A stretch of DNA of 64,000 bases, taken from NCBI RefSeq assembly GCF_000006765.1, contig NC_002516.2. The stretch is one strand, 5' to 3'. How positions within the stretch are numbered: position 1 is the first letter of the stretch; each line of letters begins with the position of its first letter. A model generated the notes under the pieces. That model was not told where the DNA came from. It saw only the letters and a program-made list of their open reading frames with translations, and searched no databases. The translations under genes and the position numbers were made by a program. Below are positions 2,420 through 34,005 of the stretch, in pieces. This stretch comes from Pseudomonas aeruginosa PAO1. Lineage in GTDB: Bacteria > Pseudomonadota > Gammaproteobacteria > Pseudomonadales > Pseudomonadaceae.

Positions 2420-3703
2420 ATGAGCACTGCCCGGAACGTCCTGCAATCCACCCAGCGACACATCGATGGCCAGCGCCTCTGGCAATCGCTGATGGATCTC
2501 GCCCGCCTCGGCGCCACCGCCAAGGGTGGGGTCTGCCGCCTGGCCCTGAGCGATCTCGACCGCCAGGCCCGCGATCTCTTCGTGCAATGGTGCGAAGCGG
2601 CCGGCTGCACGGTCAGCGTCGATCGGGTCGGCAACATCTTCGCCCGTCGTCCCGGGCGTAACCCGGACTTGCCCCCGGTGATGACCGGTAGCCACATCGA
2701 CACCCAGCCCACCGGTGGCAAGTTCGACGGCTGCTTCGGGGTGATGGCCGGCCTCGAGGTGATCCGCACCCTCAACGACCTCGGGGTGGAAACCGAGGCG
2801 CCGCTGGAGGTGGTGGTGTGGACCAACGAGGAAGGCTCGCGCTTCGCGCCCTGCATGATGGGCTCGGGCGTATTCGCCGGGAAGTTCACCCTGGAGGAGA
2901 CCCTGGCCAAGCGCGATGCCGACGGTGTCAGCGTAGGCGAGGCGCTGGACGCCATCGGCTACGCGGGAGCGCGCGATTGTCTCGGACATCCGGTGGGCGC
3001 CTATTTCGAGGCGCACATCGAACAGGGGCCGATCCTCGAGGACGAGGAGAAGACCATCGGCGTGGTGCTCGGCGCGCTCGGGCAGAAATGGTTCGACCTG
3101 TCCCTGCGCGGCGTCGAGGCACACGCCGGGCCAACGCCGATGCACCTGCGCAAGGATGCCCTGGTCGGTGCCGCGGCGGTGGTCGAGGCGGTCAATCGCG
3201 CGGCCCTCGGCCATCAGCCGCATGCTTGCGGCACGGTCGGCTGCCTGCACGCCTATCCCGGTTCGCGCAACGTGATACCCGGCGAAGTGAAGATGACCCT
3301 GGACTTCCGCCATCTGCAACCGGAGCGCCTGGACTCGATGATCGCCGAGGTCCGCCAGGTGATCGCCGCTACCTGCGAGAAGCATGGCTTGCAATACGAG
3401 CTGGTGCCGACCGCCGATTTCCCGCCGCTGTACTTCGACCAGGGATGCGTCGGCGCGGTGCGCGAGGCGGCGCAGGCGCTGGGCATGCCGCAGATGGACA
3501 TCGTCAGCGGCGCCGGCCACGACGCGATCTTCCTCGCCGAACTCGGTCCGGCGGGGATGATCTTCGTGCCCTGCGAGAACGGCATCAGCCACAACGAGAT
3601 CGAGAACGCCAGCCCCGACGACCTGGCCGCCGGCTGCGCGGTGCTGTTGCGGGCCATGCTCAAGGCCTCCGAGGCGATCGCCGGCGGCCGCCTGGCGGCC
3701 TGA
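2420..3703 (+). CDS. hyuC: N-carbamoyl-beta-alanine amidohydrolase (beta-ureidopropionase, M20 family)
   Basis: GSHIDTQPTGGKFDG, WTNEEG, EAHIEQG and SGAGHDA motifs; ATG at 2420 after RBS GAGGAG. Confidence 0.9.
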   Translation: MSTARNVLQSTQRHIDGQRLWQSLMDLARLGATAKGGVCRLALSDLDRQARDLFVQWCEAAGCTVSVDRVGNIFARRPGRNPDLPPVMTGSHIDTQPTGGKFDGCFGVMAGLEVIRTLNDLGVETEAPLEVVVWTNEEGSRFAPCMMGSGVFAGKFTLEETLAKRDADGVSVGEALDAIGYAGARDCLGHPVGAYFEAHIEQGPILEDEEKTIGVVLGALGQKWFDLSLRGVEAHAGPTPMHLRKDALVGAAAVVEAVNRAALGHQPHACGTVGCLHAYPGSRNVIPGEVKMTLDFRHLQPERLDSMIAEVRQVIAATCEKHGLQYELVPTADFPPLYFDQGCVGAVREAAQALGMPQMDIVSGAGHDAIFLAELGPAGMIFVPCENGISHNEIENASPDDLAAGCAVLLRAMLKASEAIAGGRLAA

Positions 3704-3753
3704 GTGGCGCTTCCATCGAGGCGCCGGCATCGACCGCCTTCTACACGGGGTCG

Positions 3754-3828
3754 GTAGGGCGAATGACGCCAGGGGCGTTATCCGCCGATGCTCGGCTGGC
3801 CGGCGGATAACCGCGTTGCGGTTATGCG
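3754..3828. repeat. REP doublet left of the IS; the second REP is interrupted by the IS
   Basis: GTAGGGCGAATGACGCC..GGCGTTATCCGCC (3754-3786) and GGCGGATAACCGCGTTGCGGTTATGCG (3802-3828); the missing CCCTAC resumes at 5201. Confidence 0.9.
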
Positions 3829-3879
3829 TATATGGACTCCTCCCGGTTTGCCAGTGTTTGTCTTGATTTCAAACCTGTG

Positions 3880-4025
3880 TACGACTGCATCCGTATATCC
3901 GGCTTCATGGAGTGGTGTTGCAACTCCCGAGCCCTGATGAAATGCGCGCCTGCATACCTGATCGCCCTAACGGCTTTGCTTCACTGCAGCAGGGAGCCCA
4001 CGTATAAACCAGGTTTCATGCAGGC
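3880..4025 (-). ncRNA. Bridge/seek RNA of the IS1111-group element (approximate core; the full non-coding region is 3845-4103)
   Basis: Two stem-internal loop-stem modules. Their loops carry segments matching the REP target (4001-4007, 3962-3969) and the circle junction (3937-3944, 3893-3898). Confidence 0.75.
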
Positions 4026-4103
4026 CGGTTCGACCGGTTCGTCATCATTGTCATTCACTGAGCAATCGTGGTGGATGTTTCAACTACGGTGTGGCAGGAA
4101 CGC

Positions 4104-5120
4104 TCAACCGGGCCGGTAGCATGTCTCCCGGCTGAGTAAAGCCCAAAGGATCCGGGCATTCTTGTTGGCCAGGGCAACGGCGACGACATTGGCAGGACGC
4201 CGTTGCAGCAGACCTTGCAGCCAGCGGCTGCGGGCATCGGTCTTGTTGGCGCAACAGCGCACGACTGCACGGGCGCCATGGATGAGCAAGGTCCGCAAGT
4301 AGGTATCGCCGCGCTTGCTGATGTTGCCCAAGCGCTGCTGCCCGCCCGTGGAGTGCTGCCGTGGCACCAGGCCCAGCCAGGCCGCAAACTGGCGGCCCGT
4401 GCGGAATTGCCGTGCATCACCGGCGGATGCCGCCACCGCGCTGGCGCTGATCGGGCCGATGCCTTCCACCGCCAGCAGGCGCTGGATGCGGGCATCGCCA
4501 CGTACGTGAGCCTGAATCTGTCGCTCCAGTCGAGCGATGCGCGCCTCCAGCGTCTGCAATTCATCTTTCAATTCACGCAACAGCTCGCCCATCGGGGCCG
4601 GCAAGGGCGCCGGCTCGGTAGCCATGACCGTTTCGAGCAAGGCCATCGTCGCCGCTCGCCCACGTCGAGTCGCGATCAGCCCGAACTCACCCAGCAAGCC
4701 ACGCACCTCATTGCACAACGCCGTGCGGGCCCGCACTAGACGACTGCGCACCCGATGCATCGACTGCACGGCCTGCTGCTCTGCGCTCTTCACCGGGACA
4801 TAGCGCATGCTCGGACGACTGGCGGCTTCGCAGATCGCCTCGGCGTCGTGTGCATCGTGCTTGTCACCCTTGACGTAGGGTTTTACGAACTGCGGTGCGA
4901 TCAGGCGTACCGTGTGGCCCAGCTCCCGCAACTCGCGCGCCCAGTAGTGCGCACTGCCGCAGGCCTCCATCGCCACCAGGCACGGCGGCAGTTGGCGAAA
5001 GAAATCCCGCACCTGTGCCCGCTTGAGTTGGCGACGACATACCACATGCTCGTGACGATCAACGCCGTGCACCTGGAATACTTGTTTTGCCAGATCCAGA
5101 CCAATGCGACTAAGGTTCAT
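4104..5120 (-). CDS. IS110-family DEDD transposase/recombinase, 338 aa
   Basis: IGLDLAK, VAMEAC and KHDAHDA (DEDD RuvC-like domain); C-terminal GLVPRQHSTGG serine motif; ATG at 5120 after GGAG. Confidence 0.95.
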   Translation of the reverse strand: MNLSRIGLDLAKQVFQVHGVDRHEHVVCRRQLKRAQVRDFFRQLPPCLVAMEACGSAHYWARELRELGHTVRLIAPQFVKPYVKGDKHDAHDAEAICEAASRPSMRYVPVKSAEQQAVQSMHRVRSRLVRARTALCNEVRGLLGEFGLIATRRGRAATMALLETVMATEPAPLPAPMGELLRELKDELQTLEARIARLERQIQAHVRGDARIQRLLAVEGIGPISASAVAASAGDARQFRTGRQFAAWLGLVPRQHSTGGQQRLGNISKRGDTYLRTLLIHGARAVVRCCANKTDARSRWLQGLLQRRPANVVAVALANKNARILWALLSRETCYRPG

Positions 5121-5200
5121 GCTGACTCCCCCTCCGGGACTTGTGGCTGCACCATTAGTCTGGCGCTTGACGCCGTAGGAGGGAGGAGTCCATTTCATTG

Positions 5201-5347
5201 CCCTACGTGGTGCTGCGCGGGGTACGGTAGGGCGAATAACGCCAGGGGCGTTATCCGCCGATGCTCGGCTGGCCGGCGGATAACCGCGTTGCGGTTATGC
5301 GCCCTACGTCGCGGTGTTGCGCGGGGTACGGTGGGGCGTTGTCCGCC
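5201..5347. repeat. REP cluster right of the IS: remainder of the interrupted REP, an intact doublet and a degenerate copy
   Basis: REPs at 5227-5259 and 5275-5307, near-identical to 3754-3828. Confidence 0.9.
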
Positions 5348-25332: not shown

Positions 25333-25603
25333 GGCGGATAACCGCGCTGCGGTTATTCGCCCTACGAAGTGGGTGCGGCGCCCGGATATTCGTTGCCCGC
25401 ACCGGTAGGGCGAATAACGCCCCCGGCGTTATCCGCCGCCGCGCCATGGAAACGGCGGATAACCGCGTTGCGGTTATTCGCCCTACGAGGTGGGTGCGAC
25501 CCCCGGGTATTCGTTGCCTGCACCGGTAGGGCGAATAACGCCCCCGGCGTTATCCGCCCGCCGTGGAAACGGCGGATAACCGCGTTGCGGTTATTCGCCC
25601 TAC
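25333..25603. repeat. REP/BIME array of five REPs in alternating orientation
   Basis: REPs at 25333-25365, 25405-25437, 25454-25486, 25526-25558 and 25571-25603; doublet period about 117-121 bp; lies between convergent genes. Confidence 0.93.
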
Positions 25604-33972: not shown

Positions 33973-34005
33973 GTAGGGCGAATAACCGCGAAGCGGTTAT
34001 CCGCC
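33973..34005. repeat. Single REP between convergent genes
   Basis: GTAGGGCGAATAACCGCGAAGCGGTTATCCGCC. Confidence 0.88.

Follow-up and report, generated by a model that had tools for sequence, protein, structure and literature searches.

The non-coding right end of ISPa11 in Pseudomonas aeruginosa PAO1 very probably encodes a two-stem-loop guide RNA for target and donor

Introduction

We have analysed the non-coding part of an insertion sequence in a 64,000-nucleotide stretch of the P. aeruginosa PAO1 genome (contig NC_002516.2), which we call the window and whose positions are used throughout. We are confident that the minus strand of positions 3887–4025 encodes the guide RNA of ISPa11 (a seekRNA in the terms of Siddiquee et al., a bridge RNA in those of Durrant et al.), comprising two stem-loops of which one is for the target and the other for the donor. 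This guide RNA and its guide segments were described in 2024, and the locus adds no new system. Siddiquee et al. (2024; Nat Commun 15:5235; preprint 10.1101/2024.04.26.591405) found that the RNA co-purified with the ISPa11 transposase, TnpPa11. An earlier note on this DNA had stated that the class of system was known and that ISPa11 was among the elements studied, and both that paper and Durrant et al. (2024; Nature 630:984) confirm this. From the raw sequence, the earlier reading had arrived at a real RNA with four guides, already published, and had placed it correctly; in that sense it is a positive control. The RNA-guided recombinases of the IS110 and IS1111 elements have attracted wide interest as programmable tools for the insertion of DNA.

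Results

ISPa11 and its copies in the genome

Judged by its sequence, the minus-strand element at window 5200..3829 is ISPa11, the reference element itself rather than a new member. It is complete at 1372 bp, belongs to the IS1111 group of the IS110 family, and its ends were located via the subterminal inverted repeats. The left repeat ATGGACTCCTCCC (13 bp, minus strand, 5181–5193) is preceded by a 7-bp extension CAATGAA (5200–5194), and the right repeat GGGAGGAGTCCAT (13 bp, minus strand, 3832–3844) is followed by a 3-bp extension ATA (3831–3829). In published IS1111 elements the subterminal inverted repeats are of 11–13 bp, and the extensions are of 7 bp at the left end and 3 bp at the right; the element in the window has the same arrangement of subterminal repeats with asymmetric extensions.

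The sole gene of the element (minus strand, 4104..5120) encodes a transposase or recombinase of 338 amino acids plus the stop codon, with a DEDD RuvC-like domain (PF01548, E 2.7e-16) and a C-terminal Tnp domain (PF02371, E 1.1e-24). It is identical at 338/338 positions (100%) to the ISfinder ISPa11 protein, as given by Siddiquee et al. (2024) in their source data. Downstream of the gene, from the stop codon (4104) to the right end (3829), there is a non-coding stretch of about 275–278 nt. A plus-strand open reading frame of 95 codons (3832–4119) runs antisense to the RNA region; it was listed mechanically, and nothing suggests that it is a gene.

Look-up of the exact protein sequence located six copies of ISPa11 in a 6.26-Mb PAO1-type genome, the DNA of which is identical to that of the window element over the 1371 bases compared. 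One of these (L081) is flanked, like the window copy, by genes for a CoA-transferase and an M20 peptidase. The window copy interrupts a REP, with GTAGGG on one side and CGCATAAC on the other; read on the minus strand, GTAGGG is the part of the REP to its left (the left flank, 5201–5206), and the core C plus GCATAAC is the part to its right (the right flank, 3821–3828). All six copies sit in six different REPs, with flanks GTAGGG[C] and [C]G(C/A/G)ATAAC, and insertion is orientation-specific at one position of the REP, between GTAGGG and CGNATAAC. The suggestion in the earlier note that the element is aimed at P. aeruginosa REPs fits these six identical copies in six REPs at a single position. 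This agrees with the report that PAO1 carries six copies of ISPa11, all of them in REPs (Tobes and Pareja, 2006). The published target of ISPa11 is GTAGGGCGaATAACCGC with the insertion point GG*CG, and the GG*CG listed in Table 1 of PMC13604230 agrees with the window copy.

The window also contains eight intact ISPa11 targets TAGGGCGNATAA, compared with 0 expected by chance, which are unoccupied candidate sites of insertion. They are found at 25353–25602, 33974–33985, 5228–5239 and 5295–5306, five of the eight forming an array of alternating orientation at 25.35–25.60 kb. No second or orphan copy of the guide RNA was found within the window.

Folding of the RNA and covariation of its helices

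The minimum-energy folds of 3830–4103 and of 3885–4043 both contain the two stem-loops, the outcome anticipated when folding of the non-coding region was put forward as a check. The z-scores of the single-sequence folding energies were only −1.1 and −1.3, which are not significant. Since these energies are unremarkable, folding alone provides no evidence, and we used covariation instead. For this purpose we collected 80 loci from contigs of one genome per species, with transposase identities of 53–80%, and located the inverted repeats and junctions in 60 loci, the window copy included. The RNA alignment comprised 51 distinct sequences, over which 21 chosen pairs were counted.

Standard base pairs were present in 96.2% of cases over the 51 relatives, compared with 72% in shuffled alignments and 29–38% when the pairing partners were slid. 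Compensatory cells numbered 239 against 61.5 in the shuffles, and double changes were seen in 16/21 pairs. RNAalifold recovers the outer 8-bp, second and inner stems of the first hairpin, together with the base and inner stem of the second.

The first hairpin is the target-binding stem-loop (minus strand, 3948..4025), which is the core of the short seekRNA and overlaps its published extent. It has an outer stem of 8 bp, a second stem, an internal loop that holds both target guides, an inner stem and an apical hairpin. The outer stem runs from G4025–C3948 to U4018–A3955, and includes GCAU (4021–4018) paired with AUGC (3955–3952); the second stem pairs ACCUG (4014–4010) with CAGGU (3960–3956), and the inner stem pairs GGCU (3998–3995) with AGCC (3975–3972). 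In these three helices 15/15 pairs vary, 14 of them with compensatory change. The coordinates of these target-loop stems are as proposed from the sequence.

The second hairpin of the long seekRNA is the donor-binding stem-loop (minus strand, 3887..3947); the published long form likewise has two hairpins with internal loops. It consists of a 2-bp base, an internal loop containing both donor guides, an inner stem from G3933–C3901 to U3930–A3904, and an apical hairpin. The inner stem is 100% paired, with compensatory changes in 2/4 pairs. The base pairs G3947–C3887 and C3946–G3888 are invariant in the family, and are consequently uninformative for covariation. The earlier note had drawn an outer donor stem GCAU/AUGC. 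This helix forms in the fold of ISPa11 and is specific to it; we rejected it as a feature of the family, because positions 3945–3942 are not conserved as pairing partners and only the 2-bp GC/GC base is kept. A short AUC/GAU helix that RNAalifold places between the two donor guides was left out, as it is probably irrelevant to the bound state.

A search of Rfam 15 gave no match to the RNA region, either at gathering thresholds with the whole window or at E <= 10 with 3700–5300. Sub-threshold matches to P33, a Pseudomonas sRNA, were seen at 3724–3825 and 5201–5300 (19–25 bits, against a gathering score of 45). These fall on the REP palindromes either side of the insertion sequence, and the P33 model may largely describe REP sequence.

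The target guides match the flanking DNA

Four segments had been proposed as guides, and all are found on the minus strand where they had been placed: UUAUACG (4007–4001), UAGGGCGA (3969–3962), CAUUUCAU (3944–3937) and AUAUAC (3898–3893). When the sequence of 3880–4025 was shuffled, all four segments occurred together in 0/200,000 cases; the product of their marginal frequencies is 1.7e-7.

The right target guide lies in the 5′ strand of the target loop (minus strand, 4000..4008) and matches the element's own right flank. Its segment UUAUACG is the complement of top-strand C-G-N-A-T-A-A, made up of the core and the right flank. Among the relatives, each position of this guide forms a Watson-Crick pair with the element's own right flank in 31–40 of about 46 cases, where 12–16 would be expected, or 36 at the near-invariant first base of the right flank. 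The mean cognate match is 6.4/8, compared with 4.0 for non-cognate pairs. One base of the guide, A4003, faces C, A or G and never T, and so is mismatched at all six genomic sites; this is the second base to the right of the core. The base opposite A4003 appears in lower case in the published target logo as well.

The left target guide, UAGGGCG, lies in the 3′ strand of the same loop (minus strand, 3963..3969). It matches the element's own left flank, having the same sense as TAGGG plus the core C and G, and so pairs with the bottom strand. Each of its positions is identical to the left flank, the core and the first base of the right flank in 45–51 of about 51 elements. The chance expectation is 15–27 per position, rising to about 40 for the seventh and last, at which the flank is almost invariably G; at the core, guide and flank agree in 51/51. 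The two target guides overlap on C-G (3964–3963 and 4002–4001). The earlier note had extended this guide by one base; the match to the REP holds for 3969–3963, and A3962 is an invariant base with no target match. The next base, U3961, is near-invariant.

The flanks are outside the element, and agreement between guides and flanks is therefore direct evidence of targeting that shared descent does not explain. The relatives provide natural examples of retargeting, with about 40 distinct sites, each matched by the element's own guides. For all four guides, target and donor alike, cognate pairs matched better than non-cognate ones, and 0/5000 permutations reached the observed agreement for each guide. 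The covariation of loop segments with sites across relatives that the earlier note had named as a check is thus found. Its description of the system as programmable holds for the relatives, by natural retargeting, and for ISEc11 by experiment; it does not extend to ISPa11 itself, since it is ISEc11 and ISEc21 that have been retargeted experimentally by changes to the guide, and not ISPa11. A handshake-type extension, in which the right target guide would continue onto the right end or the right donor guide onto the left flank, gave no signal in the relatives compared.

Two loci from Sphingomonadales assemblies (L010 and L058) carry nearly the same element in the same kind of site. In both, left guide and left flank agree, and right guide and right flank do not. 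L058 has a frameshifted transposase gene, with nine stop codons in a straight translation.

The donor guides and the ends of the element

The right donor guide, (C)AUUUCAU (minus strand, 3937..3944), is complementary to the top strand of the left end, ATGAAAT(G) (5198–5191). The segment had been given as 3944–3937. Positions 3943–3937 do follow the left end; C3944 pairs with the left end in ISPa11, and only 4/52 relatives have a C there. The guide agrees with left-end position 5 in 52/52 relatives (35.5 expected), with about 3 changes on the tree, and with position 6 in 41/52 (20.5 expected), with about 8–10 changes.

The left donor guide (minus strand, 3892..3898) consists of AUAUAC (3898–3893) followed by the near-invariant G3892 (51/52). 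It reads in the sense of the right end, ATATA plus the core C (3833–3828), and so pairs with the bottom strand. The match of AUAUAC to the right-end junction, part of the original reading, recurs in the relatives: the guide agrees with the right end at position −3 in 51/52, at −2 in 52/52 and at the core in 44/50. Six variants of the right end occur (ATATAC, ATATAT, ATGTAC, ATGTAT, ATGCAT and ATACAT), and all six are mirrored in the left donor guide.

When placed on the transposase tree, the co-variation of donor guides and ends involves few independent changes (about 3 for the core), too few for a sign test. Because guide and end are inherited together and the changes are few, shared ancestry is not fully excluded for the donor loop. 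The comparison of relatives is consistent with donor guides that follow their own element's ends, on evidence that is statistically thin. Taken together, about 50 relatives with about 40 targets lend independent support, at the level of sequence, to pairing of the RNA with the donor ends in the IS1111 group, a point left open in the seekRNA paper (Siddiquee et al., 2024). Further independent cases for the guides are L042, L044, L051 and L055. The left end of L051 is ATTGGG instead of AATGGx, and is unmatched by its right donor guide; its right end has the unusual sequence ATACAT, to which the left donor guide corresponds.

Do these data require that both stem-loops act as guides? The most sceptical position would be that the stem-loops amount to no more than structured DNA or RNA of an ordinary kind, for example a terminator or a REP-like palindrome, and that their matches to the flanks are due to chance. 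The weak single-sequence z-scores and the REP palindromes that surround the region would suit this explanation, but no terminator-like site was found in the RNA region, the four segments were never recovered together in shuffled sequence, the guides follow some 40 different target sites in relatives, and the RNA is published as co-purifying with the protein. We regard it as almost certainly wrong. It could also be argued that guiding is confined to the first hairpin, i.e., to the target loop of the short seekRNA, and that recognition of the ends of the element falls to the protein, which would use the subterminal inverted repeats. The second hairpin would then have kept its matches for another reason, such as RNA processing or protein binding, or simply by co-inheritance with the ends. 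We consider this unlikely, while noting that the short seekRNA of ISEc11, without the donor hairpin, supported transposition at least as well as the long one, and that according to Siddiquee et al. the long form has no established role, and the mechanics of IS1111 elements may differ from those of IS110. The small number of independent donor events and the failure of the L051 RDG to match its own left end point in the same direction. Set against this, the donor segments lie in the internal loop of the second hairpin with the same geometry as the target guides, and every variable position of the ends (left 5 and 6, right −3 and −2, and the core) is mirrored, with 41–52/52 matches. Moreover, all six right-end variants are matched, and donor guides are predicted for ISPa11 by Durrant et al. 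The reading that we adopt is that of a two-stem-loop RNA, in which the role of the donor loop is inferred.

The circle junction

A single nucleotide is common to the target GTAGGG-C-GNATAAC and to the circle junction CCATATA-C-AATGAAATGG. Relatives have either C or T here, and nearly every element has the same base at both junctions. In five loci (L023, L028, L029, L062 and L074) the left and right junction nucleotides differ (C/T in three loci, T/G in two); some 50 other elements have the same nucleotide on both sides. The guides of L029 predict C on both sides.

The circle junction of ISPa11 is predicted to form a promoter. Its putative −35 box, TGGCAA (minus strand, 3848..3853), lies in the right end, and the promoter would be completed only in the excised circle, where after a 17-nt spacer a −10 box TACAAT is made from the right-end TA (3830–3829), the core C and the left-end AAT (5199–5197). 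The shared junction nucleotide is thus the third base of the −10 box, and relatives with a T core have a perfect TATAAT. When the junctions of 56 elements were joined over a short length, the −10 box was TACAAT in 31 and TATAAT in 19, with TTGCAA or TGGCAA as the −35 box. No sigma-70-type promoter was found in the integrated copy. This fits the junction-promoter model published for the family, whereby the mRNA of the transposase and the RNA downstream of it are transcribed together in the circle, with processing of the RNA to follow.

Catalytic residues and activity of the element

The transposase residues D9, E52, D89 and D92 align with D11, E60, D102 and D105 of IS621. At codon 258 (minus strand, 4347–4349) there is a threonine, aligned with the catalytic S241 of IS621; its counterparts are S256 in ISEc11, S258 in IS1111A and S253 in ISKpn4. 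At the place of the conserved Ser-Gly motif of the C-terminal Tnp domain the sequence is S257-T258-G259 (HS-T-GG), and it is the same in the reference ISPa11 protein. Thr258 is common to relatives at 77–89% identity, and slightly more distant relatives have HS-S-GG. From these alignments, either Thr258 or the adjacent Ser257 may be the nucleophile of the ISPa11 transposase.

The earlier note had called the copy intact, and it is, being identical to the other five genomic copies and possessing D9, E52, D89 and D92, with the caveat of Thr258. Could the RNA nonetheless be readable in an element that is no longer mobile? The threonine at a position occupied by serine in IS621, ISEc11, IS1111A and ISKpn4, together with the integrated copy's lack of any promoter-like site that we could find, would suit a dormant relic. 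Yet the six copies have no nucleotide differences over 1371 bp and occupy six different REPs, from which we argue that the enzyme is active in spite of Thr258. The presence of threonine in the relatives at 77–89% identity indicates that it is kept by selection, and S257 adjoins it. Furthermore, more than 1000 unique ISPa11 insertions and the formation of circles have been reported. We find it very improbable that the copy is a relic; the enzyme has evidently been active recently.

Discussion

A proposed mechanism

The events would proceed as follows. Transcription of the guide RNA most likely occurs together with that of the transposase gene, which lies upstream of it, from a promoter that would exist only in the excised circle, with its −35 box in the right end and its −10 box TACAAT across the junction. 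In the target loop, the 5′ strand (4007–4001) would pair, rightward of the crossover, with the top strand of the REP, and the 3′ strand (3969–3963), leftward of it, with the bottom strand, the two guides overlapping on C-G. In the donor loop, the 5′ strand (3943–3937) would pair with the top strand of the left end of the element, and the 3′ strand (3898–3893) with the bottom strand of the right end. The RNA and the DEDD recombinase would then juxtapose the circle junction (...CCATATA-C-AATGAAATGG...) and the REP site (GTAGGG-C-GNATAAC), and strand exchange at the shared C would insert the element in one orientation. The chemistry of strand exchange in ISPa11 is inferred by analogy with IS621.

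As read here, both loops have the same geometry, the 5′ strand reading the top strand rightward of the crossover and the 3′ strand the bottom strand leftward. The top-strand match is thus 5′ of the bottom-strand match, the order published for IS1111 elements.

It is conceivable, if on balance doubtful, that the ISPa11 clade differs from IS621 in mechanism, in respect of the nucleophile, the single shared nucleotide and the pairing of the junctions; the literature that we searched yielded no description of such details for this clade. Concerning the junctions, A3962-U3961 correspond to left-end positions 2–3, and a G follows the core in both 3′ guides. That of the left target guide is conserved, and becomes A when the flank does. 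With A3962, U3961 and the post-core G bases, the RNA could pair with the integrated junctions via G-T wobble. If so, it would pair with the integrated junctions, the empty site and the circle, in a handshake-like arrangement that would serve both excision and insertion.

Comparison with known systems

The ISPa11 seekRNA of Siddiquee et al. (2024) is the same RNA from the same element, downstream of tnp, with a long form of two hairpins and a short form over the first. The long RNA spans 39–210 nt after the stop codon (about window 4065–3894) and the short RNA covers the target loop (preprint 10.1101/2024.04.26.591405). The 3′ edge of the published long RNA, at about 3894–3897, coincides with the edge of the left donor guide. 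In the preprint's legend to Extended Data Figure 6 the short seekRNA is given as 96 nt, yet positions 86–161 make 76 nt; a length of 96 nt would result if the RNA began at 66, in which case a small conserved hairpin at window 4036–4026 would be part of it. The order of the matches is the same as ours, with the target GTAGGGCGaATAAC and insertion at GG*CG. Nothing substantive differs between that account and the present reading, except that only the two target matches were marked and the role of the second hairpin was left open.

The donor segments read here correspond to the scheme of Durrant et al. (2024). In that paper, LTG, RTG, LDG and RDG segments are predicted for ISPa11 (Extended Data Figure 10c), its bridge RNA is placed in the right end (Supplementary Table 5), and the guides are described as assigned by inspection. 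Our assignment was made independently from about 50 relatives, and the agreement with that paper is at the level of scheme and placement.

The seekRNA of ISEc11, also of the IS1111 group, has the same architecture and guide order as ISPa11 and has been found by experiment to be essential and reprogrammable (Siddiquee et al., 2024). ISEc11 differs in having a short linear site as its target and a serine at the nucleophile position, and its transposase is about 30–40% identical to that of ISPa11 in the identity matrix of that paper.

A search by sequence for solved structures matched only IS621 and ISCro4, both of the IS110 group, and none of the IS1111 group. IS621 (Durrant et al., 2024; Hiraizumi et al., 2024; PDB 8WT6) shares with ISPa11 the DEDD RuvC-like and Tnp domains, an RNA of two loops, each of them reading both strands on either side of a short core, a promoter at the circle junction and a REP target. 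The proteins are distant, with E 7e-8 over the C-terminal domain. The RNA is upstream of the gene in IS621 and downstream in ISPa11, and the order of guides within the loops is reversed, the bottom-strand guide coming first in IS621 and the top-strand guide first in ISPa11. The subterminal inverted repeats are of 13 bp in ISPa11 compared with 2–3 bp in IS621. The core of ISPa11 is a single C or T at both junctions, then G in the target, in place of the CT dinucleotide of IS621, and S241 of IS621 has Thr258 as its counterpart in ISPa11.
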